A stretch of DNA of 64,000 nt, from assembly GCA_000708835.1 (NCBI GenBank), contig DF236972.1, positions 248,001 to 312,000 on the forward strand, written 5' to 3'. This DNA comes from Klebsormidium nitens (lineage: Eukaryota > Plantae > Klebsormidiophyceae). A program made the position numbers and the translations under genes. This document shows positions 11,796-42,667 of the stretch, one piece after another (within the stretch, counting starts at the first letter, position 1; each line of letters starts with the position of its first letter). The notes beneath the pieces are model-generated. The model was not told the origin of the DNA, made no database searches, and was given only the letters and a program-made list of their open reading frames with translations.

Positions 11796-12031
11796 TCAAG
11801 CGTCCCGGCTTTGCTCCTCTAGCAAGCGCCGCTCGCGCCGCTTTTCGCGCCAGTCCCTAAACCAGGCCCGGAACAAAATGAACGCGATGCAAGCCAGCAG
11901 AACGGCGACCGCGGAGATGAGAACGGACGCCACGGCAATGGCCGCGGTTCGGACGTCCTTGGACGGCGGCAGCACGCGTTCACCGGTCGGGACTGTGTCC
12001 TGGGGGCCGCGTTGGACGATCAGGAACGTGC
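11796..12031 (-). CDS. Terminal exon of the giant gene: end of GPS-like motif, single TM helix, 24-aa charged cytoplasmic tail
   Basis: GTFLIVQRG...RTAAIAVASVLISAVAVLLACIAFILF-RAWFRDWREKRRERRLLEEQSRDA*; acceptor TTGCAG at 12033-12032. Confidence 0.9.
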
Positions 12032-15000
12032 CTGCAAGGGCGGAAACGCAATTCGTTCTCTCCTTTATCACCTTTTTGATCCTTAAAACAGTGAAATTAA
12101 AATGATGGGCAGCATCTCAGTTGTTGAAAATAAAGTCGGCCTATAGAAACTTTGCAATGACTGCACCCGATCAGCTTAAAGGGACCCGTCGTTTATCCGT
12201 AACGCCTCGGCGACCAGATAACCCATATATCCGCAGTTTGGGTCGCTGAATTGGGTACCACGTAACGAATTTTCAGGCGACACGAGGCCAGGATGTGATG
12301 GGAAGTGGCCGCCGCGGTACGACATGAGGTAGACGCCCTCTTCGGTTGTAACTCAACAATGATCTCAAGAGCCTTCTTTGCTCTTCCTTATTAGCAGAAC
12401 GAGTACCCAAAGGGATTCCCTTTTTCCCCAGAGTGTTGTTTCTTGGAAGAAGGTTCAGGCTTTTGAGATGCGAATGCGGTGCGTCGGCAAGACTTCGCCG
12501 TGCCGTTTGTAGCGGCTAATTATCGGCGGGAAATCGGAAAAACCTTACGGCCGTACCACAAACTGCATCATCCACTGGGCCATGAGAAATTTAAAGACCG
12601 TCAGGTTTCCCGTTCTAGCCTGAAAGTTGAGCGGTCCAGTCGTCGGAGAGTCCGAGTCGTCTTTGTCCTAATTCCAAGCGTCTTACGTCACAATTCTCAG
12701 ACATCCAAGCATCTGACGTCACGACTCCTCACCTGCGCTAGTCGGCGCACACGTGGCCGTTCCTCCTACGACCTTCAGCAGAGTCGTTTGCCGGGACGTC
12801 GTTCCGGTGAGCGACGTTCCGTTCTGCTGCAACTCCCAGCATTCCGTCGTTCCGGGCGCCCCCGGAATGTACAACTGCGACTGGAGCGGAACCGTCACCT
12901 CGAACGGATGCGCTGTGCAGCTGAGCGCCACTGGGGTGCCGGCGCTGCTCGTAAACAACACGCTAACCATGCTGCTAACCACCCGAACGCTGCCTAACCC
13001 CAGCAGGTTAAGCCCGGCCAGCCCCTGAATCGCCGCCGAGTAATCAATGTGGGTTACGATCACCGACAGCTGGTCGGTGCAGTCCGGGTTAGCCTTGCAG
13101 CAGTCCCTTAACCCGCCCGGTAACGCAACGGTCGCCTGCGAAGCCGTCGACGCCTGCGTGGTTGCGGTTCCCGAGACCAGGGGGGTGTTAACCGGCTGCT
13201 GCTCCACTAACCACCGCCGCCTGTGTGGCGTCCCCACGGCCTGCGAGCCTTGCCTTTCGGTGGCCGAGTCCCAGCGGTTAGTGCTTAACCCGCTTGCGAA
13301 CTGGCGCCCCAGCCGCTTAAGCAGCTGCCCGTTGGTCTCGGCGATCTCGCGGGCGCTGGCCCCGGCCAATGTGCGGGTGCCACGTGTCAGGTCCTCGAGC
13401 AGCGCGGAGTCCTCGTCGGATTGCAGGAGCGTCCGCCTCCGGTAACGGTTGTTGCTGTAGTAGTTATTGTACGTGTAGTCGTTATCATATCGGTCGTTGG
13501 ACGAACCGAGCGAACAGCTGTAGCTGGTCTTGGCCGGCAATGACGTCGTGTCGATGGTCTGCAAAATGAGAACATGACGTCAGCATCGAACGGTGTGGAC
13601 CCAAAAGCGTGGGCCTTCGCCGTGCTGATGTTGTGCTTTGCTGTCGTTCTACGATCTAAGAGCTACGTGGCGCTACAGAAGCGAGCCACTTGTCACCAGC
13701 TGGCTGCCAAAAGACCTTCCCATCCAAACTTGCAGACGCTAGTCAAGACGAAAGCCGCAGGTGTAATTCTCAGGGAGAGAAAAGGCGCTTCAAATCCTCC
13801 TTCAAGGTGCACGACAATCTATTTGCAGACACCAGAGATGATACGCAAGTCCAGGAGTGATGACGTCAGGAGCGGAACTAAAGCGCAAGCAGGGAATGCC
13901 ATCCACGACAGCATGATCGCCGTTGAGAAGATCCAACACTTGCAATCGCCCAGGGGCCAGTCGAGTTGCACTTCTCGTATCTGAGCCTGGGTTTGCGCCT
14001 TCCTTTCAGAGCTAAGTCCACTTTCTCATGACAACACACGTTTCCCCAACAGCGTACTCCTTGCCGACCAGCATCTAGTGACCTCACCTGGTACGTCATG
14101 CTGCACGACTGCGACTGGTAGGTCCCGGCGGGCTCCCCCGGGCACTTGTTCTGCGCAAACGCTTGGGCCAGGTAATACAGCAAACCCTGACCGGTCCAAA
14201 GGGTGCGTAGGCACCCCCCCGTGCCGTCATCATCGTCGTCATCGTACCTTCTTGAGGGCGACCGCGAAGGAGAGGGAGACGGGGATTTGGTCGCCGGTGG
14301 GGACTTGGGACGGGGAGGGGGAGGGTGTGGGGAGATCGTGGGGACGGGGACGGGGTAGNNNNNNNNNNNNNNNNNNNNNNNNNNNNNNNNNNNNNNNNNN
14401 NNNNNNNNNNNNNNNNNNNNNNNNNNNNNNNNNNNNNNNNNNNNNNNNNNNNNNNNNNNNNNNNNNNNNNNNNNNNNNNNNNNNNNNNNNNNNNNNNNNN
14501 NNNNNNNNNNNNNNNNNNNNNNNNNNNNNNNNNNNNNNNNNNNNNATCTGGACGGGGACGGGGATGCGGGGGGGACTTTGAAGGAGATGGGCTTGCGGGG
14601 GGGGACTTGGACGGGGACGGGCTTGCAGGGGGGACTTGGAAGGTGATGCGCTGGGGGGGGTTGTTGTGGAAGGCGACGGGCTTGGCACGGGGGAGCGGGA
14701 GGGGCTCGGCGATTGCGATGCCGAGGGGGAGGGGGAGGGGGACGCGCTCGGGGATGGGGAGAGCGAAGGGGAAGAAGAGATGCTTGGGGCGGGGCTTCTG
14801 CTCGGGGAGGCGGAAACGGAAGCGCTGGCGGACGGCGACGGAACCGCGGAAGTGCTGGGGGAGGGGGTCGCCGAGGGAGAGGCGGAGACGCTGGGCGAGG
14901 GGCTCCGGCTCGGGGAAGCGGAAACGGAAGGGCTCGCGGAGGGCGACGGAACGGCGGAGACGCTCGGGGAGGGGGTCGCCGAAGGAGAGGGGCTTGTTGA

Positions 15001-18000
15001 CGGGGCGGGAGAACTAGAGGGGGATGGGGAGGGGGAGGGGGAAGAAGACGGAGAGGGAACTGGGGATTTTGAGGGAGAGGGGGAGGGGGATGCTAGCGCC
15101 GACGGGCTTGCGGAAGGGGGGGGCGAGGCGGATGGGCTGACACTGATTGCAGGGGAGGGGCTGAGACTGATTGACGGGGACGGGCTTGCGCTTAGAGAGG
15201 GGGAAGGGGAAGCGCTTGCCGAGGGGGACGGAGAAGGGCTGAGAGACGGCGAAGGGGAAGGGCTTCGCGAGGGGGACGGGACTGCGCTTGTTGAGGGGGA
15301 GGGAGACGCGCTAAGGGAAGGTGACGGAACCGCGCTTGTTGAGGGAGACGGGCTTGCGCTGAGGGAAGGAGACGGAGTTGCGCTTGTTGAGGGGGAGGGG
15401 GAAGCGCTAACCGAGGGGGAAGGGCTTGGGGTTTTTGAAGGGGAGGGGGAAGAAGATGGCACGGCGGATCGTGAGGGAGAAGGGGACGTCGAAGGAACTG
15501 GGGACTTTGAGGGTGAGGGGGAAGGAGACGGGGACGGGTAGAGCGTTCCGTAGCAATAACCGTATCCTTGGGGACAAGCCGAGCTGGTAATGTTGATGCT
15601 CTGCAAGTGGGCTTGGTTAAGGAGTTGACCCAAAACGGAGATGATGGTCGCCGCGATGTTCTGGTCGTTGGCGTACGCGCTCCGGCTGACGTAACCCGAG
15701 ATGGTTATCAGCGCGTTCTGGCACAGCGCGACCGTGCTTTGATCCAAGTCACTGTAGTAGTTGACCAGCTGCTTGAAGCTCGCGAGGAGCGCTAGCAAGT
15801 CGCACTGATCGCCCGAGGTTTGTAACACTAACAGGAGCGCTTGCGCGATCTGCTGCTTGATCGTGGTCGTGTTGGGAGGGTTGGCGGGATCAAAGTTCGA
15901 GAGACCCCCCCAGTCGCAAGTCGGGTTGGAAACCGTGACATACGGAACAGGGGAACGAGACGGGGAGGGAGACGGAATGGCGGAAGGGGAAGGGGAGGGA
16001 CTTCGTGACGGGGAGGGGGAAGTCGAGGGTGCCGGGGAGGAAGAAGGAGAGGGGCTTCGCGAGGGGGGGGGCTCGAAGAAGGGGTTGGCGAAGGGCTTCT
16101 GGAGGGGGATACCGAGGGAGCGGGAGATGCCGAGGGGGCTGGAGAAGAGGATGCCGAAGGGGGGGGGAGCTTGAAGGAGAGGGGCTTAAGGAGATAGAAG
16201 GGGAGGGCGAACTAGAAGGGGCGGGAGAGGAGGAAGGACTTGGGGAGGGGGAAAAGGAGGGTTGCGCGGAAACGGAGGGGCTAGGAGATGCTGAAATTGA
16301 AGGTTGAGCGGATTGTGATGGGGAGGGGGATTCGGAGGGGGCTGGCGTGGTGGAAGGAGAAGGGCTTGACGAAGGGGGGGAGAACGTAGAGGGGAAGGGA
16401 GTGGGGAGGGAGAAGGAAGAGGGGAAGGGGAATGGAAGAACTAGGGAGGGAGAGTGATGCGCAGAAGGAGATGCGGANNNNNNNNNNNNNNNNNNNNCGG
16501 ACGGCTCGGCGGAAACGGAAGGGCTGGGCGAAGCGGACACGGAAGGCTGGGCTGACAGCGAGGGAGAGGGGGAGGGGAGGGGGAGAGGGAAGCGGAACTT
16601 GACGCCGAGGGGGAGGGTTTGGCTGAGATTGAAGGGGAGGGGGAAGGGGTTTGGGAGGGTTGAGGCGAAGTTGACGGGCTTGGGGGGGGAGACGTAGACG
16701 CAGAGGGAGAGGGTTCCGCAGACATAGATGGGGAGGGGAGGGGGGAAGGAGATGGCGACAGATCCGGGAAGTAGATCGGGGGAACGGGGAGCGTATTGAG
16801 TCCGCAGGAGCATGCGGTAGTGGCCGCGAGAATTGCGACGGGGTCTCCGGTTGCGAGTGCGGCCTGGAGCGCATTTAGACAGCTGGCGGTGACCTCTCCG
16901 GGGGGGACGTCCACGTGCTTGACTGTCACCCTCGCGGCGACGCAAATCTGCGGCAAAGTCGCAGGCGGAGCTGAGCGCTGGATGACCTAAATCTGACGAT
17001 CCAGAAGAACGCATTGAGCTGAATAATAATCACAGGCGACTTATCTGCAGTCACTGATCTTGATTCAACAGCTAAGCTGGTGAGTTTGTAGTATAAGTGA
17101 GGACTCCAGATACAAGGTAGGCCGTTCTGCCAGGAGTTGGAAGGATGGGCGTATTCGATCTAAACCCTGATGGAATGAAGGTCGTAACAGCTTTCGAAGT
17201 TGGCAAGCAGAGCAGTTTATCTCGAAGCATGTGTCACGATTGAAACAAGCTTTTGTGGAGGGGTGAATTCTATTCACGTGTGCCGACGCATCTTCACAGC
17301 CGTCCGAATGAATGGAGCACCGAATCCTTCCTTCGACAGTAGAGACCACTTGGGGAGCACGGTTCCAATAATGAACGACGTTGCCTGCTACGCCGCCATA
17401 GCCAACCTTTGCGGCCCTTACCTGCGAGAGCCACGCGTCCGAAACGCAGGCGTACACCGTCCGCGTATCGTTGTTCGCCGCTAACCCGGCGGGAAGCGTC
17501 GCAAACGTATACGACGGCAGCTGGCTGTTGGAAACGAGCGCGATCTCTAACCCGTCGTCGTCGACGTAACCGATTTCGTAACTGAGGGGCGGGAAGTCGG
17601 TGGCCCAGCTGGCGAGTGACGCAGTGTATGACGTCAGGCCGTTGTCCCATCCCTGGGCGGGAGTGACCGTGAGGCAGAGCGAGGGGGCGTTGCAGACCGG
17701 GCCACGTGGCACCTGGAGATTGGCGGTTTGAGAGTCAGACCGTGTAGCTGGAAGATAAATGGCAACGGTAAGGTACTTGCTTCCTCGTCACATTGTCTCT
17801 GTATTCGACAGTTACAGATGGAATATAAGGAGGGTCAATCGAGGTATGGCAACTAGAGTGCCGGTCTAGAAGGGGCACGGAAGCGGCTAAAAAAGGCTAT
17901 GTTGAAACAGCGCGCTCGAAGGGGCCAAGACTGTGAAAGATGCGCTTGTGCGGACCGAGAATCATCCAAAGCCGTGGTAAACAGAGATGCCGAACTCAAA

Positions 18001-21000: not shown

Positions 21001-24000
21001 CTGATGAGAAGAACAAGGGAATCGAAACCGTAGGGTCTGGCTATTGTAAGGGTTGTTCTCTGCATTTCACCTCCCAAAACAAATGCAGACGTCAAGAGCT
21101 ACCTTACTGACATTCATCATTCACTGATGAGCTTCGATCAAGGATGAAGTTCTCACTGCCTTCGATAATGCTCCGAACAGTTTAAGGAGGCATCAACAGC
21201 TCATTTGGTGCGTGCTCGACACCGGGATTAGGCTGCCCCGTCTGCTAAGGTAGGCGTTAACAATGTTCCTTGAAACAGAACATCCAAGAATCAGAACATT
21301 CAAAAAATGTTGAGGCAGAGTCGTCGTTTCAGGTTTGCGTTCCCACCTGACCAAGGAAGCTCGCAACTGTCAGCGCCACCGTGTAGTTCCCGGGGCCCAA
21401 GTCCCGGCTGTCCAGCCACAGCTGCGTGGCCCCTTGCTGCGCCGCCACCTCATCATGCGCTGACATCAGCGACACGACATCGGGCGCGCTCGCGAGCGTC
21501 CAGTAGTACTTCCCGAGCGGACGCCCGGACGGGTCGCTCGAGAGGGACGCGTCCAAAACGACCGCGGTCGCCGCATTAACGGCCGCGCAGCGCGCGCCAA
21601 CTAGAGTGGGGCCGCTTATAACGGCGATCGGTAACGGTGGGTTGTCGGGCCAGTCAACCGTTACAGTGACGTTTTCGTCGAAAGGAGTGCCGGTCCCGGC
21701 CTGGATGAGGCCGTTCGCGAGGAGCGCGATCGTGTTGCCGGGAACTAGAGTGGCGGATGTGCCCAGGGTTACAGTAACCGTGGTGCTGGTTATGGTGCAG
21801 ACCGCGCCAGATCCGAGGAGGTTGCGGGTGGCGATTGCGAAGATGAGGGCGCAGCCGGACCCGCTCAGATTCGGGTCGGGCATGGAGTTAAGGCTGACCA
21901 GAACGCTCTTGCAGTCGCTGCTCATCTGTAAAGGAGGAATCTGGGTTAGTTCACTGAACCGTTGAGAATCTAAATGCTTTCCCCTCGAAGAACTTGGGAG
22001 TGCAGATCAATGTTTCGAGACTTCCAAATGGACGAAGGTGAAAGCTGCGCCACCGTTCCAGGTCGAGTTCGATCTTGGGGTGAATCGCTTCGAGGAGAAG
22101 AAGCCGTCACGGATTGCTAGGACAGAAGTCTGTTTCAATTGAGGTTAAAGGGTTCAATTTCTACGCACTCGACCCAATGTTCGCTAAGCTTAGGGTACAA
22201 AGTCATACGTTCAAGACGCAAAACCTTTTCTCTTTAACAGGAATCGAAGCTCGACGTTCTTCCTATATAGCCGCTGTCAAGTTGAAGCACACCTCTCTGC
22301 GGGGCCCCCGAGACAAGAAAAATGGTCGACACGACCACGCTTAGCATTTTAGCGTCAAGTTCAGACCCCGCATGAACTCAGCAGAATAGATCTTAGGAGA
22401 GTCTGGAATGCGCCTCCCTCATTTTCAAACCCGTAACCTCGACCGTGACGAGGTAAAAGGGTGTACCTCACCGCATCACCAATTTCGAAGTACTTGCTAT
22501 CGTCCCTCGACAATTGACTACGATCATTACGTATCAAAGCAATGGATGATTGTTTCACCGTACCTTTGCCCCTGTCATGAACGGCTTGACCGCCTGGCAC
22601 GTGCCCCCACACGGCATGCATCCCGCCACTCCCGTCCCCCGGTCACAAGAGCAGACTTTGCACCCCCCCGGAACGGGAGCACAGATTCGATTCACCGGAC
22701 AGTCCGCACTCGTCCCACACGCGGACGCTGCCGGGACGCCTTGGCTCGCCCCGCCGGCAGCCGCCCACGTGTCGCAGTTATTGACGCACGTGCCGAGGCA
22801 CGCGGAGGAGCAGCCACGCGTCCCCGTGAGCGGGTCGCAGGCGCACTCGCGCGTGCAGTTCCCGCCCGCGAAAAACGCGCTGCAAGTTTGGGACCTCGCG
22901 CAGTCGGAGTTGCCCCGGCAGAAGCAGTTCTGGGTGGAGTCGAGCGAGCCGGGCGCGCAGAAAGTGGGCGAGGTCGCGGAGAATCCCGCGCACAAATCGG
23001 TGCCGCAGAGGGCGTCGATCAGGAGACGCGCGCCGGAGTAGAGCGGGGGGAAGGACTTGGGGAGGGGGCAGTAGGTCGCGATTCCGTTGCTGGTGTTGGA
23101 GCCCGGAATGTTGAAGGCCTGCGGAACGGAAAAGGAGGGGCTTGGAACAACTAATCAGGCGGTCCGCAAGTGTGCAAGAGAGTCCCCGCTGGACCAGGGG
23201 TAAAAGCTTCCGTTCTGTCGAAACAATAGCGGAAAGCATCAGGCGGAAGAAGTGTGTAAAGGCCTATAAGCTCCGTCCGTTTTCTTTGACCGGAAGGCGT
23301 TGTGAGCACAGGAGGACTCTTTCCTTTCAAAGTGACGTCTAAAGTTTTGCACACAAGGGACGCTTTCAGGTGCTGAGGGGTGGTCAACTGTCCGCCCGCA
23401 AGAGGCGTCCCTTATATGAAAGTCTAAGTCAGTGCAAAGTAACAGCAATATCGAACTTTGGTTTGCCGAAAGATTCAAACAATCAGCAGCATAAGCCTTT
23501 CTCCGCACCTATTTGTTGAGCGGCTGACTGCACTCTACTACGCAAGGCAAGGCCGTGATAAAGTCCACGTGGCACAAACGGACGTCCCGCTTACCTTGAT
23601 ATACATGTCCAGCCCATCTTGCGCCACGTTGTTTGTAAACGCACACAGGTCAAACCGGGAGGTCGCTTTCGGCCCGGTGTAAATTGCCCCGGCCGTCAGG
23701 CCAGCCACGTTCGAGTCGAACAAGCAGCCGGAAAAGTGCCCGGTAGAAGACACCGCCAGCGAAACAGCGCCTCCGTCCCCACCGGCCGTGTTCTTCGTAA
23801 CCGTGCAGTTAACCATGGTTATCACGCTGTCAAGGTAAAGCGCGCCCCCTGAAGCCCCCGCCTTGTTCCCGGTGAATAGGCACCGGGCGAAGTTGACGCT
23901 TCCGCCGGTCGCGAAAACGGCGCCCCCGTTTCCTGTCGCATTGTGGTTAGCGAAAACCACGTTGACGAAGGTGCCAACCGAGTTGGTTAGCGAGACCGCG

Positions 24001-33000: not shown

Positions 33001-36000
33001 AGCTGGATGTCGCACACAATTACGATGTGGGTCGCGGTGCCGAGGGCGGCGCGCAGCTCGGACTCGTGGCAAACTGCAGGGAGGGAAGAGCGATCAGACC
33101 TGGTTCTGGAGACTTCGTGCGATGATCGAATAATAGCATTACGAAAAGTCGTTCGAGAAGACAGAAATCAGGATTCAGGTATGGCGGAGGAATGGTCTGA
33201 GGAAGAGGTGATTTTGCATAGGTAGACCGCTCAAGGTCAGGCAGCCTTTTAGCTGAAAATGGATAAGCAGGTGAAGAAAGTGGGACGCCCAGAAGCAGCC
33301 TGTGGTACGCGGAGCAGGATGCGCTTCCACGGCACTTTGAGTCGTACGCATCACAAACCGCTACGTCAAGTTCACAGGACTGTTTTGAAGGGCAGCCCTG
33401 TGAGTCTGTCACGAGGGAGCTCATGCAGACCATTCCAAGCACGAAGTGCGGTCGGATGGAGTATTCTAGGATTTGATCTGGCCACAGCAAACGGAAAAGC
33501 GAGCGGAAAACGGGTCAAGAGCCAAACGCCTCGAAGCAATCAGACCTTCGCTCGAAGGGGAAGGATCCTGAATACTGTCTACTGCCCAACGCCGACGGTA
33601 TGGATACAAAGAAGACTTTCAAAACTTCCATGTTCGTGTCAGATGCCACCATTGTAAGCCTACTCACCGTAATACACGCCATCATCGCACGGGCTGATGG
33701 CCGGGGGACACGTGCCCCCCGAGCAACCCGGGCGCTCCATGCAGGCAGTCCGCCACTGGCACAAACTCGCCCCGGTTGAGAGGTCCGTGATCCGCCCACA
33801 GACATCGGGGGATCCCCCGGCGACGCACGGGTTGTTGGCGTAATGGCAGTAAGCGTAGCTGTCGTCCCAGGCACACGGCCCGGTGGAAAGGCACGCGTTC
33901 CTGGTGGTGACGCCATGGCAGGGGTCTGCGGGGGCAAGGATGACGTCAGCGGAGAAGAAGGTGACGTCAGGGGAAAGGAGAGCGACCGTCAGCACGGAGA
34001 CGCTCGTTAAGGAAGCGTAGCTGTTGTTTCAGGAACAGGGCCCAGTGGAAAGGCACGCGTTCTTGGTGGTGACACCGTGGCAGGGGTCTGCGCGAGCTTT
34101 GGATGGTGTCAGCGGCGTGGATCGTGATGTCAGCGAAGGAAGGATTTTTGGTGTAGAGCAGGTGGCGTCAGCTTCGTGGCAAGTCAAAGCTGATGAGGGC
34201 ATTCACTCCAGTGCAGCAGCCGTTGTCTTTCTTGCCAGTTCGAGGAAAACCTTTTCCAAGGTTACACAGCCTTTCCATGAAGAAGGATATAGAGGCAAGT
34301 CTGTTGAGCGCCGCAGATCCGGTTAGACGGAAGAAAAGGGTGGGCGTAGTCCGTGTGACAGCTGTCGCATCAGTCAGGAGTCTTTCCGCAACGCCTTCTC
34401 ATTGACAAACGGAATCCTGGACTTGGAGAATGATATTCAACTTCCGCGCTTTTCCTCCCACCCATTCTGACCACGCTTCATGCGTAGCCCTGGGCGTCGT
34501 CCAAAAGACCTTCAAATCTCGCGACTGTATCTCCGATTGAGGAAGCCAAAACTCCTTCCTAGAAACGTTTCGCCTCACCGGTTTTGATCTCGCACGAGTC
34601 GTCGAAAACGCACTGCGGCGACCGCGCGACGCAGTCCGCCTCGTTCTGCGGGCCGCAGCAGATGTCCCCCGGCTTGCACCCGCTGTTGTAGCAGGATCCG
34701 GACGCGCGGCACAGCGGAAACGGACCGGAAGCCAGGTTCGCGCACACGCGCGCGTCGGAGTTCGCCACGGAGCACGGGTTGGAAACTGCACGCGCAGGGA
34801 AATACAGATTAGCGAAATACCGGTATGTTCTACTTGAGAGAGTTTCATTTCCGCACGCGCAGAGGAGATTTTACGTTGGTAGAGGCATGTCAGTCGGCCG
34901 CAGTTGCTTGCTGAGCGACTAGATCGCCCTGAGACTCCCGATTTGCTGGACAAAGCCTTGCAAAAGCTACTTAATCGGCGACACAGAAGCCGGGTTCGGT
35001 GTTTGAAAGTCTCCGGGACGCACTTGTGTGAGGTTCCCTCAAACGTCCGCGGACAAAGAAAAAGCATCAAGCGGAATAGAGTCTGTAGAATAATGCGCGT
35101 GCAAAAACCAAATGGATGTCAAACGAGCAACTGCAGAGGGACCAACGACGGTCCAGCCAAAGAAGCGTTGAGGACAACGGACCTCGGATCACGTCATAAA
35201 AATCACAATATCTCTGCCGTTGAACCAGCCTTCGTGCACTAGCAATCATAGCTAAGCCCTCGTCATACGAACTTGAGTATTTTTTTGAAATACTGGCGTT
35301 CTTTCTTTTCCAAGCCAAGCTGCGCATCTTTCAGGGGGTAAGAAGTCACACGGGGTTCTCACTTGAATAGCAACCCCCTGCCACGGTTCCGTTCCCCCGC
35401 AGATCCGCCAGCCAGTGGCACGACGGAGCGAGCGCGCACGCGCTATCATCTAGTAAGTCCCAGCAAGGATCTGCAAGACGGGAGTCGCTCGTCAGGTGAC
35501 ACGTGTCCAATGTTCTCGAGCTGAAGTGTCGATTTTTGCATCAGCAGTTTGCACCCAGCTCGATCTGGAAGATTCAATCTTATCAGTGCGTCCAATGAGC
35601 AAAACGTCGATCATTGGATCGATTCGTGATAAGCATTTGTGCGGAGTATCTCGCGCGTCGAACCAAAGTGTAGAACATTCTTCTATATGCTAACACCTCG
35701 ACGCGTGGCGTTGCCTTCATCGGAAAAACTTCTGGAGTTGAGCCCTCACAGACGGAGTACAGACTTCTCTAAGTTGCCTCCAAACCACGAGAGACATGAT
35801 TCTCTTGTTTAGTGACGACTACTGAGCCCATGTAATACATGTGGGCCGCCGCAGGTCGCACAGGAGAATCAAAAGCTACTGTAACCTGGAGCGCTCCCGG
35901 AAAAAACACTTCCAAACGACGCTTCTGGCACTTTTGACTCTCAGATCCAAGAGTTGCGACTTATCTTGGGAACAAACCGCGACTCACCCCACCGCAGGTT

Positions 36001-39000
36001 GCACTGAGGCGCCCACGAGCACTGCGTTCCCGCAGCCGCACAGTCCACTTGATTGTGCTGGTAACAGCACTGATCGTGCGGGTCGCAGTGGTCGAAGATA
36101 CAGTGGCCCGCCACGTGGCACAGCGGCTCGCCCGTAAACCCGTCGACGATCGCGGTGCATACGTCAGGGTCGTCGTCACCCAGGCGGCACGCGTTGTTGC
36201 CGGTGAAGCAGTGGCCGGCGTGCGAGCCATTGATCGGGGAGCCTTCCCAGAGACACGTGGCAATGGCGGAGCAGTCGGCTTTGGTTTTCCAGTTGGCGCA
36301 AAAGTCTGCAAAACCCACGAGAGGTGATTCATGCTGCAAACCAGTCGAGTTTGGGCTTGTTCAAAACGAAGCACTGCCCGCGTGGGATTTGGGGGGCCTC
36401 GTGAGGAGGCCTGCTTCGTCTGCGTCTCTCCTTTCCAAGTTTTCTTAAGGAACATGTGCAGAAAATCAAGGTCGCAGGACTCTACAGGTTTCAGCGGACT
36501 GAGGCAATCAATTGTGTCAAGAATCCTTGCAGTCTGCCTGCGTCACGTGGATTGGCAGAAGCCGAGGAACGGACACGAAGCAGTACTGTTTCTCAAATCT
36601 GTCGCCGGCCTTGCTCGGCGTTCCTGGAACAGGTTGAAAAGGCTTCGAAGCTTTCACCAGATCGTTGACTTTCACGAGATGAAGGAAGTGAATAGGCCTG
36701 CGGAGAGGAGCCTCCAAAAATCGTAAAAGCCAACGCAAGGCCAACATAGCGTATCACACGCGCTACGCAAAGGGCATGCTCACCGTATCGCAGGCTGCAG
36801 TACGTCTCCCACACGCACGCGTCCTCCGCATTACACTCCGTTGGCGCGCTGAGGGGGCAACACGTGTCGTCATCCTGGCAGGTCGTCTCGCTACAGCTGC
36901 CCTCGTAGCGGCAGAGCCGCGTCCCGAGCGCGTCCGTAATGTTGTTGCACGCGCGCTCGTTGGCGTTTCCGTCCCAGCACGGGCTGACCGCTGCGAGAAG
37001 AAGGATGACGTCAGCATTTCCAAGAGCTGATGTCAGCTTCGAGAGAGATCTTTCAGGAAGTCTCCGTGGTCTTGTTACAGCGCGCTTGATCATCGAAGAT
37101 GTTGCACACGCGCTCGTTGTCGTTCTCGTCTTCAGCAGGGGCTGACGGCTGCGAGAAGGGGGATGAAGTCAGCATTGCCAAGGCTGGCCAAAAGCTGTCG
37201 TCAGCTTCGAGAGCGAATCAATCATATCCTGTGACATTGATGCACGCGTGCTCGTTGATGTTTCCGTCCCAGCAGGGGCTGACGGCTGCGAGGAGGGGGA
37301 TGACGTGAGCATCTCCGACGGTGGCAAAAAGTGACGTCAGCATCCGGAATCAGGAACTTGATCGAGTCTTGAGGTCTTCTCCCAGCGCGCCTGATATCGC
37401 TGCCCACTCTACAGGGACTGAAGGCAAGCGAGAGAAGAATGATACCAGCACCAGGAAGAGAAAGATCTGGAACTGGTATTGAAACTCTGAGCGTTGAGCT
37501 CGCTCCTGTAACGTTGCTACACTAAAGTGCGCGGCTCCTGGCAGGACTGACGGCCGCAATGCGGAAAGCGTCAGCATTGAGCAACGAGGGTTGCAGGTCA
37601 TAAGTGACTTGGAATGAAAGTTGACATGGTGGGCGGAAAGTACGTCATGCCTTCTTTGTGCCACACCTGAAGGGCCCGACGGCAGAACGACATTGCTGAT
37701 ACTCGAACAAGAAAGCCCGTCGAAATGTGATTCAGGAACGCTGACTGGCGATGTCAAGCGGTGAACCAATGCAGACAGAGAATTCACGGCACCTCGTTTC
37801 GAGAATCTGTACAGATATGATTTTTCGTTGCTCAAGAAACACTCTTGGTGTTACAAACAACTGTTCCTTTTTGCTGCAAAGGGCGATTCGATAACGAATG
37901 CATTTCGAAAACAGGCGAATTGTCTCAAAAGGTCAGCGGAATGGATGAGGAACAGACTCGGGCACCCTAAACTCGCACCCAAGATGTTGCACGGCCAGTC
38001 TGCATTTCATGAGGTGCAAAATTTACGGGAATCGACGATACACCATACTCCCCGCCTTTGTGGTAGACATCGAACACTCCGTCGAAAACAACATCTTGGG
38101 TGCGAGGTTAAGGGGCCCGAGAGAGGGACTCACTGCTCATGCAATCGCCGCCCCCGCCCGCTAGCGGCCGCCAAGAGCACCCCTCCAAAGCAACGCACTC
38201 CGGCCGGCTGAACGACCCTAGCCAGCACGGATCTGCAGCAAACGACAAAGTCGGAGGTTTATGTCCCTTTCAGTTCATCATGTTGTGGGTTGTCTTCACT
38301 CGTCAAGGGCTCAATTGGGACTCGTAGTCTTGGTACTGAGGCTTCTTGATTGGTTCCCGTAGTCGCTGTGGATCGATTCCGCTGGACACAAAGTGTGATC
38401 GATTCAAAACTATACTGCTCTGTCAATCTTGTTTGTAGACAGCCGGATCTGAGCGACGAAAGGCGACTCTCGCCGATATATGTTGAAGAGGCGGTTCCTT
38501 ATCAGGTCTCTCATAAGTCGAATAATGGAGCACATTCGTCAGTGCCGTTGCTTTGTAGTTGCATGCTAAAAGTAAGCCCTCACCAATGATCAGCTCGCAG
38601 TACGGGTTCCAGTCACAGCTCCCCCTGGCTGTACACGTGTCCTCATCGTGGACGCCGCAGCACTTGTCCCCCTCGTAGCATTCGTCGTGGTTGCACGCCC
38701 CCTGAGACCGGCACATCTGGCGCCCGGTGGACGGATCAACCAGGGCGTTGCACTGAGCCGGGTCGTCCAACTCCAAAGGGCAAACCGCGGACACTGCAGA
38801 GACGAGGATTTAAAGTCGTTTAGGTCTTCTGATTTGTTAGGTAGATTTATTGTAAAGGAATGAAGGGGAGAAGGAGGAGACAAAGCGATTGAGCACCGTG
38901 GATCAACCAGGGCGTTGCACTGGGCCAGGTCGTCCAGCTCGAGCGGGCAAATCGGAGACACTACAGAGGCCGGAGATTGAGATCAAGATTCCGCCTATTC

Positions 39001-42000
39001 AAACCGGGGGAGGAGTGGCGATTAAAAGCAGTGAAAGCCAGGGCACTGCGCTAGACAGATTGCAGAGGCCTACACCGCATAAGTCCAAGAATCTAGATTT
39101 GTTGTCCTGACTCGCTTCTCAACATCTCCCCGGAAATGGATCAGAATGATAAGAAACTTTTTTAGGGTTTTAGGGGTTTAGAATGATGCCGCTGATCAAT
39201 AAAAGCATGGCGCGGCAAAAAGACGCCCTTCTCCCTGCTTATCGCGCACCACTTTCTCTATCGGTCGGCAAGAACGAGGCGGTATCACATGCCAGTCGAC
39301 CACAGACAAAATAATGCTCTCAACCAATCAATGACGGATACTCGTTACTCGAAAGGGGCCTCCTGCAAAGAGGGCTGAACGAAAAGGTGACGTCAGAGGA
39401 CTGCGTGTATCCTCACCGCTCGCGCAGACGCCGCCGAGAGTGGCGTTGACGTGGCTCAGCTGCCAGTGACACGTGGCAGTCTGGGAGCAGCTCGTCCGGT
39501 CGTGGGCCCAGCACGGGTCTGAGAAAGGCAAACGTCAGCGTCTTTTGTAATGTATCTGGCTTACTAGTACTATTAGGTGTTTGCAACGACCTTTTTGGTT
39601 GTTTATATGTGGTTGTTCCAAGTAGCTGGGAGATCGACCGGAAGTGTCTCCTTTGCATTGCTGCCTCCCCAAATGGTCCTGCCTTTCGGACGTTCTGAAG
39701 GGTGTAGACCGGAAGACGTTTTGCTTCCGGCGAATCAAGCAGTGGAAATACGAGCGAGCCATAGCATTCAAAATCGCCGTTGGGCACTCCTAAGTGTTCT
39801 TTCAAAACATCCAAGCTCGCCAGATCTCGCGACACCTATCAGTCCTCTCAGCTAGCCAGGGGATTACTTTTAGCCAAAATATCTCCGGAGATTCAGAGAA
39901 CAACGATCGAAACATTTCTCTCACCCCACACTTCGAGGCAGTACGACTTCCAGTAGCACGTCCCGTTCGTCACCGCGTTACACGTGGCGGGCTGATCGAC
40001 GGTGCAGCATTCGAAGGCGTGGTTGCACCGGTTACTGTTGCAAAAGTACTCTGAGCGGCACAGCGGCGCGCCGCTGACGTCAGCCACCGCGGCGCACGCG
40101 GTCGGGTCGCGCCGCTCGATGCCGCACGGATTTGCAACTGCGGGTTAAGCAAACCGTGAAGTTTTGACCCTCACTTGTTCCCGTCTCGTGAGGTCATCCA
40201 ATCAGCCCGACGAGTAAAATGTGACGTCAGAAGCGACACCAGAACATTATAAGCAGCAAGCATCGGAGTCTGACAAGCCTGAACTTTCGTGAACTCAACT
40301 TTGTTCTCAAAAATACATTCATAACGATAGGTCAATACACAAGTGCACGTCGTCGGTACACAAAAACACGAAGAAAGAACAGAAAATGGAAGATGAAAAG
40401 CTCTGTCAGCATCTTAGCAGGCAGTTGTTAAGCCAACGAGCGAAGGCAACGAATAAAAAAAGGAGTATAATTTGAGGGTCATTCTATAGGAAGCCTTACC
40501 GTTGAAGCAGTAGCCCGAGTCTGCGCCGTGCCCGGCGCTGTTCCGCCATTGACACCCAATCGTGTTGTCGCACTGGGTCTGGCTCACTACTCCGGCGCAA
40601 GTGTCTGCGAGTGTCAAAGACGCTGACTGCTTCTGTCTGACCCAAAAACGTCAAAGGTTCCTCCGATACTACGTCCAAGTGACGTTTCGGACGTATGTTC
40701 GTGTTTCATGTGCCCGTGCTTTATCAGCGCACTTTGAAGAACGAAGGTTTTGGGACGCGAGAGCTTGGATAAACTCTAGAGACCGGTGGTTTGCGATATT
40801 GGGCAGAATCCGAGATTCCTATCAGTGAAGAGCGTTTGCACAGTTGAGGAGAGGCACAGCTCTGAGGATCGGGACGATTTATGTGACCAGAACACGAAGC
40901 CTGGTAGCGGGAATCGAATAGTCTCAGGAATGCTTTAATGTGCCTGTCTACGCTTCAAAAGCAATGGATTGTAAAAGAGAAGATACTTTGAAGTGTAGGT
41001 AAGAAGACGATTGTGAAGGAAGTCTTCCCCTTAGGAGGTGGCTCCGTCCTTAACTTCTGAAAGATTGCACACTCGAGGCTTCAAGAAGGATCAGGGGCTC
41101 TGACGAAAGACGAACGCACCACGCCGTCGGCTGCAAGATTGGGGACGATCAAAACATAGGAAATCCCAAAACATCAGGTTCGCACCACGAGAGGATCGCA
41201 TACCATTTCGCAACACGCAGAGCGACTCCCAGTTACAATTTGGGATGCCGCCGCACCGTCCGGAGTTGTCCACTCCGCAGCACTGGTCCGACGCGTCCGA
41301 ACAGCCGTTGTACACGCATTTACCGGTCATGTGGCACGCGCCGTCCTTGCCCCCCAGAGCGAGGCACGCGAGCGTCGAGCGGTCGCCGTAGCTGGGGAGC
41401 TGGCAGCTAACTGCGCGACCCAGGAATATAGAGCTTAAACAGTTTCTTAAACAAACTGCCACTTTTGGAAGACGTGGGAAGTCACACTGTTACATGAATA
41501 AGTTGATCAAGTTGAAAAGACTTCAACAAACTGACTATACTTCCCTAATAATCGAAAAAGCGGAAGGCACTCGAAAGGTTGTTGTGTTGAGGGCGTCTAC
41601 GTTCTTCATTGCACAGCCGCTCAGCAACGTTCTCGCAAATGCACCAAAGAAAAGATGGCTGTTTCGCAACAAAGAAGCATTGTAGTGAATTCGGGTGTCG
41701 CTTCAGAAAAGGGCCGAAGAGATTTGCGACTCACTGCTTGAGCATGTGCCGTACGAGAAGTTGCCGATGGTCGGGTGTGTAAACTGGTCCCAGACACATC
41801 CATGGCACAGGTTGCACGAGCCCTTGTTCGAGTATGACTTGCAGGGATCTGCAAAAGCAGGAGGGCATTCACACCAAGAGTAGAATTCTTGCAGAAGGTT
41901 TCGATCATGACATTGGTGGTTGACAGTGCTTGTAGCAGTGATTCACGAAGAGTACCTGTTACCTGAGCTGATACATTGTTGATACCCTAGTGTACTGTGT

Positions 42001-42667
42001 AGTGTGATTATAATCGGGCGAATCTTTAAAATTTTGGATCGCTGCTGCGCTCCGCATTTTTGCACTGTGCTGAAGGTAGTAGTTTTTCCAGCTTGGACAA
42101 AAGGGTGGTGGTTGACTCAGCAGCGATTTTGATTCAGAAGAGTTCATCAGCAGTGGCATCACATGGTCAGTGCACCACTTTGCTGAAAATTACCTCTGTC
42201 ATTGCAGCCGCATTTACCTCCTGATAGCTTTCTAAGACACCACCATCATGTTCACATGAGATACGCCAGAGTTTTTAAAGGTTGGCCCATACTTCTCCAA
42301 GCATTCTGCTCTGAAAACAGGTCCATAAAGAAAAGGCAAATAAAAAATGCAGACAATATCCACGTCAGTCCAGGTGTTCTCTCTTCTGCAATAATGCGTA
42401 GGTGGCAAGATTGGTTACAGACAGGAAACACTTGACGCTTGGCGGTTATAAAGTGTGATTGGCATAGTGGTTGTAAAGCGACTCACCGTTCAAAGGCTCG
42501 CACTCTGTTACCCAGCTGCACTGCTGCGACTTTTGGCAGGTATCCTCGTCAGTGAATAGGCACAAGTTAGTGCCCGGAAGCACGAGGCCCTGTCCGCGGA
42601 CTGCTTGCAAAGCGCTCAGTGTTATCACAACGACCAGCCACAGAAATAACCCTGGACAAGGCCTCAT
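11796..42667 (-). CDS. Giant (~4,800 aa) single-pass cell-surface protein, polycystin-1/REJ-GAIN-like with Cys repeats, beta-helix adhesin modules and Ser-Pro stalks; 33 exons
   Basis: Exons 5'->3': 42667-42487, 41848-41735, 41410-41204, 40604-40500, 40137-39925, 39518-39417, 38793-38584, 38232-38134, 36990-36784, 36305-35988, 35470-35363, 34785-34579, 33925-33668, 33073-31890, 31516-31427, 30990-30913, 30507-30433, 30038-29948, 29513-29440, 29054-28937, 28565-25584, 25119-24883, 24553-23595, 23118-22564, 21925-21347, 20770-20564, 19986-19710, 19279-19015, 18515-18269, 17712-17422, 16947-14088 (contains N gaps and local frameshifts), 13558-12733, 12031-11796. Every junction is GT-AG and phase-compatible from the signal peptide (MRPCPGLFLWLVVVITLSALQAVRG) to the stop. 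Exon sum is about 14.5 kb. Confidence 0.85.
12733..13558 (-). CDS. Giant gene: GAIN-B-like beta domain with two RRxL sites
   Basis: RYRRRTLLQ, HRRRWLVEQ, VALP, VSSMVSVLF, PFEVTVPL, ECWE...TCAPTSA|G. This layout is typical of the membrane-proximal GAIN/GPS region of PKD1-like proteins. Confidence 0.65.
14359..14546. other. Assembly gap (188 N)
   Basis: Run of N inside the Ser-Pro low-complexity exon. Confidence 1.
16478..16497. other. Assembly gap (20 N)
   Basis: Run of N inside the Ser-Pro low-complexity exon. Confidence 1.
17422..21925 (-). CDS. Giant gene: PKD/REJ-type Ig-like domain series (6 exons)
   Basis: VVLDASLSSDPSGRPLGKYYWTL, LGPGNYTVALTV, LTYQWT, TPGRKYSLAL, LIVDASDPDD, IFWRC, LKPGVFTF, YRWVC...LEPGYSYTVIVYI, WATDFPPLSYEIGY, TVYACVSDAW. 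These match recalled REJ-domain (PF02010-like) motifs. Confidence 0.8.
22564..23118 (-). CDS. Giant gene: Cys-rich linker exon (CxxxxDCxxxxxC, EB/Dickkopf-like units)
   Basis: CRGNSDCARSQTC and CGTSADCPVNRIC; about 22 Cys in 185 codons. Confidence 0.75.
23595..33073 (-). CDS. Giant gene: six tandem right-handed parallel beta-helix modules (Chlamydia Pmp/POMP-like GGA(V/I) + FxxN repeats)
   Basis: Each module opens with a cap xV(S/T)xExQLRxA...IVxxxDIxLxGPLPx(V/I)T at about 33070, 28530, 27690, 26778, 25945 and 24300. Each contains many GGAV/GGAI and FxxNxA repeats and closes with GxD(L/F/M)(Y/F)...CP...C. Confidence 0.85.
31990..32935 (-). repeat. Giant gene: Ser/Pro/Ala/Gln stalk with 24-bp (STSAQPS[A/P]) tandem units
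   Basis: About a dozen near-identical units (+ strand GACGTCGAAGCTGACGGTTGCGCT and variants) at ~32130-32470, within a ~320-aa SP-rich run. Confidence 0.9.
33668..42667 (-). CDS. Giant gene: N-terminal array of Cys-rich repeats on 13 exons separated by phase-1 introns
   Basis: Short exons (99-114 bp) encode DxC-x6/8-C-x5-CxW-x(9-16)-C. Long exons (207-213 bp) encode C-x9-C-x(9-12)-C-x5-C-x4-C-x(5-6)-CC-x7-C-x(5-7)-CxW-x3-C. All 13 introns are phase 1. Confidence 0.88.
34010..34089 (-). pseudogene. Decayed 5'-partial copy of the downstream exon (pseudo-exon)
   Basis: GCAG|ACCCCTGCCACGGTGTC... reads DPCHGVTTKNACLSTGPCS*NNSYA, versus the intact DPCHGVTTRNACLSTGPCAWDDSYA at 33925. TGG has become TGA at 34031-34029. 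Confidence 0.9.
37060..37335 (-). pseudogene. Two decayed tandem copies of acceptor + exon start (pseudo-exons)
   Basis: Acceptors at 37287/37286 (SPCWDGNINEHACINVTGYD*) and 37150/37149 (SPC* plus a 1-nt insertion) duplicate the intact exon starting at 36990 (SPCWDGNANERACNNITD). Confidence 0.9.
38899..38965 (-). pseudogene. Decayed 5'-partial copy of the downstream exon (pseudo-exon)
   Basis: CTGTAG|TGTCTCCGATT... reads SPICPLELDDLAQCNALVDP, versus the intact SAVCPLELDDPAQCNALVDPSTG at 38793. Confidence 0.9.
39160..39180 (+). repeat. Short interstitial telomere-like repeat (TTTTAGGG x2 plus partial)
   Basis: TTTTAGGGTTTTAGGGGTTTA in an intron. Confidence 0.55.

Follow-up and report, generated by a model that had tools for sequence, protein, structure and literature searches.

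A stretch of about 31 kb in Klebsormidium nitens, from 11796 to 42667 of the window (the whole 64,000-nucleotide stretch of DNA that we analysed), is one real, expressed mosaic gene. It combines adhesin beta-helices of bacterial type with a REJ ("receptor for egg jelly") module of animal type and Ser-Pro rods of plant type. Our overall reading, which we hold to be probable, is that the 33 exons form a single gene, whose product is a type I membrane glycoprotein about 4,850 residues long with rods that would carry its head through the wall.

The gene lies on the minus strand and runs from 42667 (ATG) to 11796 (stop). Its exons were assembled by a dynamic programme on splice sites and codons followed by manual curation, and give a coding frame of 14,541 nt (4,846 codons) that is free of internal stops (Table 1). 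The encoded protein begins with MRPCPGLFLWLVVVITLSALQAVRG and closes with a 25-residue hydrophobic helix and a 24-aa basic tail. Separate genes lie on both flanks, including a DHHC gene upstream at 44488-45036. An earlier note on this DNA had proposed that dozens of short ORFs splice into one protein running from a signal peptide to a TM helix. The rebuilt open frame bears this out, and the domain order is the one given there, with one TM helix, a 24-aa tail and Ser-Pro rods all present. From exon 14 onward the frame and exon structure are established; support for the N-terminal exons (33668-42667) as part of the gene is only indirect.

Table 1. Exons and features of the mosaic gene, in window positions.
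Feature	Position	Strand	Content and basis
Exon 1	42487..42667	-	Start codon, signal peptide, first 4-Cys module; first in-frame ATG, hydrophobic h-region
Exons 2-13	33668..41848	-	Alternating short and long Cys modules; gene model
Exons 2-7	41848-41735, 41410-41204, 40604-40500, 40137-39925, 39518-39417, 38793-38584	-	
Exons 8-13	38232-38134, 36990-36784, 36305-35988, 35470-35363, 34785-34579, 33925-33668	-	
Exon 14	31890..33073	-	Beta-helix unit 1 N-cap, Ser-Pro insertion, helix again; one open frame
Ser-Pro insertion in exon 14	about 32028-32927	-	About 300 aa
Exons 15-20	31516-31427, 30990-30913, 30507-30433, 30038-29948, 29513-29440, 29054-28937	-	Each about one Pmp repeat of unit 1
Exon 21	25584..28565	-	Beta-helix units 2-4 and start of unit 5; Pfam, TIGR01376
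Exons 22 (25119-24883) and 23 (24553-23595)	23595..25119	-	End of unit 5, unit 6
Exon 24	22564..23118	-	Cys-rich linker, two similar C-rich repeats
Exons 25-30, PKD-like/REJ module	21925-21347, 20770-20564, 19986-19710, 19279-19015, 18515-18269, 17712-17422	-	
Exon 31	14088..16947	-	2,841 nt in transcript; REJ tail, rods 1 and 2, helical block, juxtamembrane start
Ser-Pro rod 1, exon 31	about 16770-15950	-	Contains gap 16478-16497
Helical block, exon 31	15948-15529	-	
Ser-Pro rod 2, exon 31	about 15528-14270	-	Contains false gap 14359-14545
Exon 32	12733..13558	-	Juxtamembrane domain; RNA junctions
RRRxLL and RRRWL motifs, exon 32	13424-13441; 13208-13222	-	Invariant
Start of GPS-like motif, exon 32	12839-12841	-	Cys codon
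Exon 33	11796..12031	-	TFLIVQ strand, TM, tail, stop; RNA junction
Last GPS-like strand, exon 33	down to 12015	-	TFLIVQ
TM helix; tail; stop, exon 33	11871-11945; 11799-11870; 11796-11798	-	Tail of 24 aa

The gene is expressed. RNA runs from several studies contain it, and there is thus no sign of stage-specificity. For exon 21, a fraction of 0.96 of its words was present in RNA runs; for 33668-42667 the fraction was 0.16-0.20 in RNA runs versus 0.216 expected, and 1.00 in DNA runs. Junctions were read from Logan contigs, among which chimeras are possible. A single RNA contig of 6,024 nt spans the 3′-UTR, the TM helix, the juxtamembrane domain, both rods and the helical block up to 17690, skips all three introns across its mapped part, and continues 1,636 nt past 17690, to about the exon 24/25 border as judged by exon lengths. 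The introns seen in the RNA contigs (17421..16948, 14087..13559 and 12732..12032) confirm the last three of the model. The contigs bridge both assembly gaps as well.

The RNA contigs also corrected the window itself. They join 14331 to 14546 through two other letters, so that the 187-N gap and 27 flanking bases are spurious sequence. Across 16381-16599, which includes 20 N, the transcript has 409 nt and the window 219 nt; this gap conceals about 190 nt of Ser-Pro repeat. One base is missing at four places in the window (14567, 14627, 16062 and 16158), and a surplus base stands at 14307; these five one-base errors account for the frame hops in exon 31. After correction exon 31 comprises 947 codons, open and in phase 0 at both ends, the 409 nt of rod 1 being left unread.

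The protein is under purifying selection, with a dN/dS of 0.106 over 1,868 codons and neither gaps nor stops. Every exon from 14 to 30 has a conserved block in another Klebsormidium species (L004), between introns that cannot be aligned, and exons 14-22 except exon 17 are conserved also in L005. Exons 15-20 accordingly match blocks in 6/6 cases in L004 and 5/6 in L005, and the 3′ part of exon 14 is kept in both as far as donor 31890. GT/AG is kept throughout exons 22-30, as is the exon 21 donor. Exon 24 is 91.5% conserved at the nucleotide level (dN/dS 0.14), and exons 25-30 show dN/dS values of 0.04-0.19 with their splice sites kept. Orthologues of exon 21 share 92% and 74% identity and those of exon 32 share 90% and 72-77%, the C-terminal 130 aa of the latter being almost invariant. 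L002 and L003 conserve the last three exons, and the L002 orthologue keeps the exon 33 sequence and the stop position.

Of the 776 aa of the Cys-rich head, 101 are Cys, and the head has 13 C-x4-7-C-x-W cores. Through exons 2-13, short modules (about 33 aa, 4 Cys) alternate with long ones (about 70 aa, 10 Cys), separated by introns that are all in phase 1; no Pfam family matched these modules. The small Cys units described earlier are present, and their number, then put at about 22, varies with how the long modules are subdivided. The Cys linker of exon 24 matched neither a Pfam nor an NCBIfam family.

Six beta-helix units follow the head, the first split by the Ser-Pro insertion. Matches to Pfam Chlam_PMP (31.2 and 26.4 bits against a cut-off of 20.6; E 1.7e-7 and 6e-6), Pfam Beta_helix (E 3.8e-12; 46.6 bits, cut-off 25.9) and TIGR01376 (24 bits, cut-off 15) all pass their cut-offs, and 25 GGA[ILVF] motifs were counted. 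Exons 22-23, with conserved GT/AG, match Chlam_PMP at E 1.7e-7. As judged from these profiles, the units are Pmp/POMP-type beta-helices, in agreement with the earlier assignment. Their nearest non-orthologous matches are PF02415 proteins (24-39% identity), and the source-named PF02415 matches come from bacteria, archaea and protists. A Pfam search of the whole model found no C-terminal autotransporter barrel, and the protein ends in one TM helix.

Three exons match the REJ domain (PF02010; profile length 452) colinearly, over 39-112, 238-311 and 319-399. The pieces have E-values of 0.049, 1.1e-4 and 0.004 (12.7 + 21.4 + 16.3 bits, whole-protein cut-off 25), and they fall under the cut-off singly because introns split the domain. 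Exon 25, a fourth exon, reached 0.95 to REJ clusters in the Atlas, with 204-212 features in common, and the region of exons 25-30 gave weak PKD_4/K319L PKD matches. Together, the three Pfam pieces and the Atlas result identify the predicted module as REJ, as had been proposed. REJ domains have six stereotyped cysteines (10.64898/2026.10.13.757955); exons 26-31 also contain cysteines.

The three Ser-Pro stretches, which correspond to the SP-rich stalks reported before, are about 300-360 residues long (in rod 1, 201 residues are readable). Ser makes up 39-44% and Pro 24-33% of them, and the SP dipeptides number 39-87 per stretch. Such long Ser-Pro stretches in a secreted protein place it with the Ser-Pro-type hydroxyproline-rich glycoproteins (HRGPs). 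For the block between the rods, AlphaFold predicts four helices in a low-confidence model (pLDDT 42); a word-indexed search found no homologue outside Klebsormidium, and all Atlas look-alikes scored <=0.46.

Between rod 2 and the TM helix lie 360 residues that most likely form a degenerate, non-cleaving relative of the GAIN/GPS fold holding the stalk on the membrane. A GAIN domain spans about 320 residues up to a point just ahead of the first TM helix and has six helices in subdomain A and 13 strands in subdomain B; its GPS motif has two disulphides and an H-L-T/S cleavage site (PMC3321182). The order of parts here is signal peptide, REJ, GPS-like motif and TM, with an unusually long distance from REJ to the motif. 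The protein contains a single GPS-like motif, which reads C-W, 29 residues, C, 7 residues, F-L-I-V. Its spacing is near the C801...C832...F840 implied by CL1 numbering (PMC3321182); the pattern, which was picked after the sequence was seen, arose in 4 of 200,000 shuffles. When aligned by the following F-L-I-V, S-A-G occupies the H-L-T position.

A serious minority possibility is that this domain is unrelated to GAIN, being another beta-sandwich (ZU5-like, for example) or an orphan fold in which the GPS-like motif is coincidental. Exons 32 and 33 matched no Pfam family at E<=1, GPS/GAIN included; a six-orthologue profile retrieved no GAIN chain from the PDB at E<=10; and phmmer with exon 32 against the full library returned only Klebsormidium orthologues and no homologue outside the genus. 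Among the best 100 Atlas matches, 13 were in ZU5 clusters and 5 GPS clusters, all <0.9. The motif retains one Cys pair (2/4 Cys) and a single Trp but no H-L-T residue, the other disulphide being lost entirely. The AlphaFold model of exon 32, which leaves out the last strand in exon 33, has an untrustworthy pLDDT of 36. The GAIN-like domain of the earlier note is thus left without profile, PDB-sequence or fold support, and without the cleavage site and one disulphide. Against an unrelated fold stand the size and position, which fit those of GAIN, the motif end 23 residues before the TM helix, the predicted order of helices first and strands after, one disulphide kept in both partners and the other lost in both, and the fact that GPS is normal in REJ proteins (PMC4700764).

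By analogy, the protein is most likely a wall-spanning adhesin or tether built on an HRGP chimera. Once in the ER, its Ser-Pro stretches would become stiff rods by hydroxylation and O-glycosylation. The C-terminal pair (about 700 residues) would measure roughly 200 nm if extended, long enough to lift REJ, the Cys-rich head and all six beta-helix units through the wall to its surface, where the beta-helices and Cys modules may bind wall polymers, neighbouring cells or substrate. The degenerate GAIN/GPS relative would merely anchor the stalk on the membrane. Since the tail has only 24 aa, any signalling would need a partner. The invariant RRRxL motifs may allow a subtilase to shed the ectodomain.

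RRxL-type motifs serve plant subtilase processing, and RRR-x-L-L and RRR-W-L are invariant in 6/6 aligned orthologue sequences, between the rods and the beta-rich part. Together with the short tail, this could mean a membrane-anchored precursor cut at RRRxL by a site-1-protease-type subtilase, its working form being a free wall or mucilage glycoprotein and its TM part serving only delivery. We think this rather unlikely: the TM helix, tail and stop are conserved across species more strongly than a disposable anchor needs. A true polycystin-1/REJ-type mechanosensor, whose GAIN-like domain relays force on the ectodomain to a membrane partner (a channel or kinase), would suit the REJ module, the GPS-like motif directly before the TM helix, and the pairing of Chlamydomonas HRGP chimeras with the PKD2 channel (PMC11015965). 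It is nevertheless improbable, given that the multi-pass part, PLAT and channel part are missing, S-A-G replaces H-L-T, about 830 residues of rods and helices separate REJ from the juxtamembrane domain, unlike in polycystin-1, and no partner is known. Equally doubtful is an evolutionary version, in which an ancient surface receptor of REJ/GAIN type persisted in streptophyte algae and was remodelled into a mechanosensor spanning the wall. Two glycosylated rods would hold the head of beta-helices and REJ beyond the wall, the GAIN-like domain at the membrane would be non-cleaving, subtilase release at RRRxL would replace autoproteolysis, and a partner channel or kinase would do the signalling. 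That the span holds two or more genes, for instance a secreted Cys-rich protein (exons 1-13) and a separate beta-helix/REJ protein, is very improbable. No read was seen across the exon 13-14 junction, no read or contig in the analysis ties exons 1-13 to exon 14, and the N-terminal exons are all phase 1-1, so that a frame match alone is weak evidence; yet exon 14 begins inside a beta-helix cap and has neither its own start codon nor its own signal peptide, no stop occurs in exon 13, and both parts are present in the same RNA runs.

Like chlamydial Pmp/POMP-repeat autotransporter adhesins (PF02415, TIGR01376), the Klebsormidium protein has GGA(I/L/V) and FxxN repeats in right-handed beta-helices; unlike them, it has six tandem units, each with its own cap, lacks the autotransporter barrel and is a eukaryotic type I membrane protein. 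With sea urchin suREJ1, mammalian PKDREJ and polycystin-1 it shares a large ectodomain in which REJ is followed by a GPS-type motif before the membrane. suREJ1 has a single TM helix, and in polycystin-1 REJ adjoins GAIN. The Klebsormidium protein differs in the distance of about 830 residues between REJ and the GPS-like motif, in lacking the cleavage triad and the lectin, PLAT, 11-TM and channel parts, and in its head of Pmp beta-helices and Cys modules. It is not a polycystin-1, and the label polycystin-1-like was too strong: it has a single TM helix, and a conserved stop follows its 24-aa tail. Fibrocystin (PKHD1) likewise combines a very long ectodomain containing parallel beta-helix repeats with a single TM helix and a short tail, but it is built from IPT/TIG, G8 and PbH1 domains and lacks REJ, Pmp repeats and Ser-Pro rods, and our analysis found no sequence link between the two. 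Nor is REJ+GPS a hallmark of animals only, as GAIN domains are reported from Dictyostelium and Tetrahymena (PMC3321182) and a REJ+GPS protein from the brown alga Ectocarpus (PMC4700764). The latter, Esi0130_0068, is also algal and non-animal, with REJ (E 4e-30) and GPS, but this 1,427-aa protein has 6-7 TM helices plus the channel part of a polycystin, lacks both beta-helices and Ser-Pro rods, and is male-gamete-specific (PMC4700764). Chlamydomonas MST3, which its authors likened to human PKD1, and its seven relatives are also giant membrane-anchored green-algal HRGP chimeras, with poly-proline rods and Cys-rich and Ig-like domains (PMC11015965). Their anchor is a partial PKD2-like channel domain completed by SIP (PMC11015965), whereas the Klebsormidium protein has one TM helix, and REJ instead. 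Its parts are known; the architecture is new and is seen only in Klebsormidium.

Exons were searched for with a splice-aware dynamic programme that combined codon log-odds for three exon classes with trained GT/AG weight matrices and barred in-frame stops, and the output was curated. The resulting minus-strand model comprises 33 exons and 4,846 codons, in agreement with the earlier note, which had proposed a single mosaic gene of 33 exons and about 4,800 amino acids. Analysis of the stop-to-stop frames placed the start of the signal-peptide frame at 42667 and the end of the frame encoding the transmembrane (TM) helix and tail at the stop codon 11798-11796, with dozens of open pieces between them. 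Read 5′ to 3′, these pieces encode Cys-rich modules, GGAx/FxxN beta-helix repeats, and Cys-rich, beta-rich, Ser-Pro, helical, Ser-Pro and beta-rich segments. Two candidates from the first gene-model passes, which mis-split the Ser-Pro exons, were dropped (an intron at 32215/32090 and a 31-nt exon at 31457); an intron at 14248/14150 was refuted by RNA contigs, and a 54-nt exon at 36711-36658 was discarded because of its weak sites and lack of Cys. The introns preceding exons 9 and 13 contain tandemly placed, degenerate copies of the intron/exon junction plus the 5′ portion of the exon that follows, two for exon 9 (37100-37216, 79% identical, and 37237-37316, 86%) and one for exon 13 (34010-34133, 81%), which ends up in a stop. 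These copies therefore look like pseudo-exons derived from module duplication.

RNA contigs from Logan, obtained from four runs of four studies, were aligned to window 11700-17690 at an identity of at least 95%. Results showed that the contigs skip 12032-12732, 13559-14087 and 16948-17421, each bounded by GT..AG on the minus strand exactly as predicted, confirming the last three introns of the model. One RNA contig of 6,024 nt ran from 120 nt past 11700 up to 17690 and continued 1,636 nt further upstream, reaching approximately the exon 24/25 border by exon lengths. Therefore, the REJ module, both Ser-Pro rods, the helical block, the juxtamembrane domain, the TM helix and the 3′-UTR lie on one assembled transcript, Logan sequences being assembled contigs and not single molecules. 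Within the last intron, short RNA contigs of low depth (about 5; 573 nt) from all four runs touched 12197-12220 and 12302-12319 and continued into unlike sequence; they probably represent a dispersed repeat or another transcript with a common short element.

The same contigs revealed errors in the assembly of exon 31. Because they connect 14331 to 14546 through two letters unlike those of the assembly across window 14332-14545, the gap of 187 N at 14359-14545 is an assembly artefact. Between 16381 and 16599, a region that includes the gap 16478-16497, the transcript measures 409 nt versus 219 nt in the window, and the assembly is thus short of about 190 nt of a collapsed Ser-Pro repeat. The contigs also had a single extra base at four points (after 14567, 14627, 16062 and 16158) and lacked a base at 14307; the errors at 16062 and 16158 sit in runs of nine C, where the Ser-Pro frame of the window hops from f0 to f2 to f1. 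Once corrected, 16380-14088 was open throughout in the expected frame, and exon 31, measured on contig coordinates, spanned 2,841 nt or 947 codons, with phase 0 on entering and leaving. A 12-nt in-frame insertion after 14722 was present in some runs only. All in all, the reference assembly is faulty at this locus, where it shows a gap that does not exist, a repeat that has been collapsed and five errors of one base each, and an annotation built on the assembly alone would probably split or truncate the gene.

The N-terminal end was tested indirectly: sampled words of 33668-42667 were present in the RNA runs at a fraction of 0.16-0.20, compared to 0.216 predicted by the model and 1.00 in DNA runs of the same organism. 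Since the RNA fraction approaches that of the model, the N-terminal exons are transcribed and their introns spliced out. The RNA runs that hold these words also contained 0.93-0.96 of the words of exon 21. Exon 14 starts within a beta-helix cap and has neither a start codon nor a signal peptide of its own, and we infer that it is linked to exon 13. No N-terminal orthologues were found in metagenome scans. The gene was seen in RNA runs of several studies and is therefore not evidently limited to a rare stage.

We then compared the gene with genomic Logan contigs of two other Klebsormidium-like species, located via protein matches. Exon identity was about 88-93% on one orthologous contig (L004) and about 75-82% on another (L005), while two further contigs (L002 and L003) span the 3′ end of the gene. 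Aligned blocks coincided only with predicted exons 14-30 and 31-33, and the introns did not align. Along exons 21-30 (1,868 codons) the orthologue showed no gaps and no stops, with a dN/dS of 0.106, and all acceptors of exons 22-30 and all donors of exons 21-30 were kept. The orthologue of exon 33 retains both the TM helix and the tail and stops at the same position. A word-indexed search with exon 30, in a collection that did not yield the proteins expected from RNA contigs, returned the orthologue only. Beside the gene, 10010-10327 and 11372-11538 of L002, which belongs to the third species, match window 58913-59230 and 60003-60175 in opposite relative orientation; these segments sit about 8 kb downstream of the 3′ end of the gene in L002, and their counterparts 16 kb upstream of it in the window. 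A rearrangement beside the gene therefore distinguishes that species from the one of the window.

Features flanking the gene
Feature	Coordinates	Strand	Remark
DHHC palmitoyltransferase gene	44488-45036	-	upstream neighbour
OST3/OST6 oligosaccharyltransferase subunit	49520-50119	+	E 1.5e-43
ORF with weak NXPE4_C match	7859-8974	-	downstream neighbour

The Pmp-like beta-helices and the REJ module described in the earlier note were both recovered by profile searches. The beta-helix region matched Pfam Beta_helix (E 3.8e-12) and Chlam_PMP (E 6e-6 and 1.7e-7) and exceeded the cut-off of TIGR01376 POMP_repeat; counting by regular expression and by eye gave 25 GGA[ILVF] motifs and six unit caps (type x-(L/F)-x-x-A-(L/I)...G-P-L-P). 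In unit 1 the cap is directly followed by an inserted Ser-Pro stretch of about 300 aa. Its closest non-orthologous relatives were PMP-repeat proteins, 24-39% identical, with bacteria, archaea, Planoprotostelium, Ectocarpus and Closterium among those named. Such proteins occur in several eukaryotes (Closterium, Ectocarpus, where they are fused with Notch/LNR repeats, Planoprotostelium and EukProt entries), and the PMP-repeat module seems, from these matches, to be commonly used in building the surface proteins of protists and algae. The REJ and GPS-like regions were profile-tested exon by exon. REJ was the best or sole Pfam match in three separate exons, colinear along the profile, and Atlas, a protein language-model search, placed exon 25 on REJ clusters (0.95, >200 shared features); PKD_4 and K319L-PKD matches to this exon were weak (E about 0.02). 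Pfam returned no family for the Cys modules, the Cys linker, the helical block or the REJ tail. For the helical block, a word-indexed search of the collection used for exon 30 was empty and AlphaFold of the block alone gave a pLDDT of 42, too low for a fold search.

The GAIN-like assignment of the juxtamembrane domain was not supported by the searches. The domain had no match in Pfam, a six-orthologue profile found no GAIN sequence match in the PDB at E<=10, and phmmer against 1.84 billion proteins returned Klebsormidium orthologues only. The AlphaFold model of exon 32, built from six orthologues as well, reached a pLDDT of 36 and was likewise unfit for a fold search, and Atlas gave weak leads only, to GPS, ZU5 and FIIND clusters (0.77-0.86). 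The domain cannot be filed as a GAIN member. A SEA domain, considered for the G-S-V-R-V-V stretch, was rejected, as the helices predicted there are not long enough and nothing in the tool results pointed toward SEA. From rod 2 to the TM helix there are 360 residues, in which helices precede strands, and a GPS-like motif (C-W, 29 residues, C-A-P-T-S-A-G-T-F-L-I-V) ends 23 residues from the TM helix. The protein contains this pattern a single time, and 4 of 200,000 domain shuffles reached it, a generous figure because the pattern was chosen after viewing the sequence. In CL1, disulphides join C801-C832 and C820-C834 and cleavage takes place between L837 and T838 (PMC3321182); the tethered-strand consensus is TxFAVLM (PMC12716839). 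With the F aligned, the Cys of the Klebsormidium motif falls on C832 and the Cys of C-W near C801. In contrast to CL1, both partners of the second disulphide are missing, and S-A-G stands in place of H-L-T. On balance, we lean towards regarding the domain as a degenerate relative of GAIN.

The overall anatomy would be that of a wall-spanning HRGP chimera held by one helix, with binding modules at its far end and no cytoplasmic signalling part. Two motifs, RRR-x-L-L (13424-13441) and RRR-W-L (13208-13222), are identical in six orthologue sequences within otherwise variable surroundings, and may be subtilase processing sites. The gene product is a concrete candidate for the link that a walled cell makes between its plasma membrane and either the surface of the wall or neighbouring cells, and the gene offers a natural experiment on the role of a GPS-type domain that is not cleaved.

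Literature searches that paired Klebsormidium with REJ or polycystin gave nothing relevant. Nor did the papers searched describe any REJ or GPS module from the green lineage, or a protein that joins Cys modules and six Pmp units to REJ, two rods, a dead GPS-like domain and a single TM helix. This combined architecture was detected in Klebsormidium only. Each part of the protein is already known: Ectocarpus has a described non-animal case of REJ with GPS (PMC4700764), Cryptosporidium has described REJ-like folds (10.64898/2026.10.13.757955), both Dictyostelium and Tetrahymena are reported to have GAIN domains (PMC3321182), and giant HRGP chimeras linked to polycystin-type channels have been described in Chlamydomonas (PMC11015965). 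With the Klebsormidium gene, a REJ module that is well supported is placed in a streptophyte alga near the origin of land plants, and the protein that carries it has the build of an algal HRGP.
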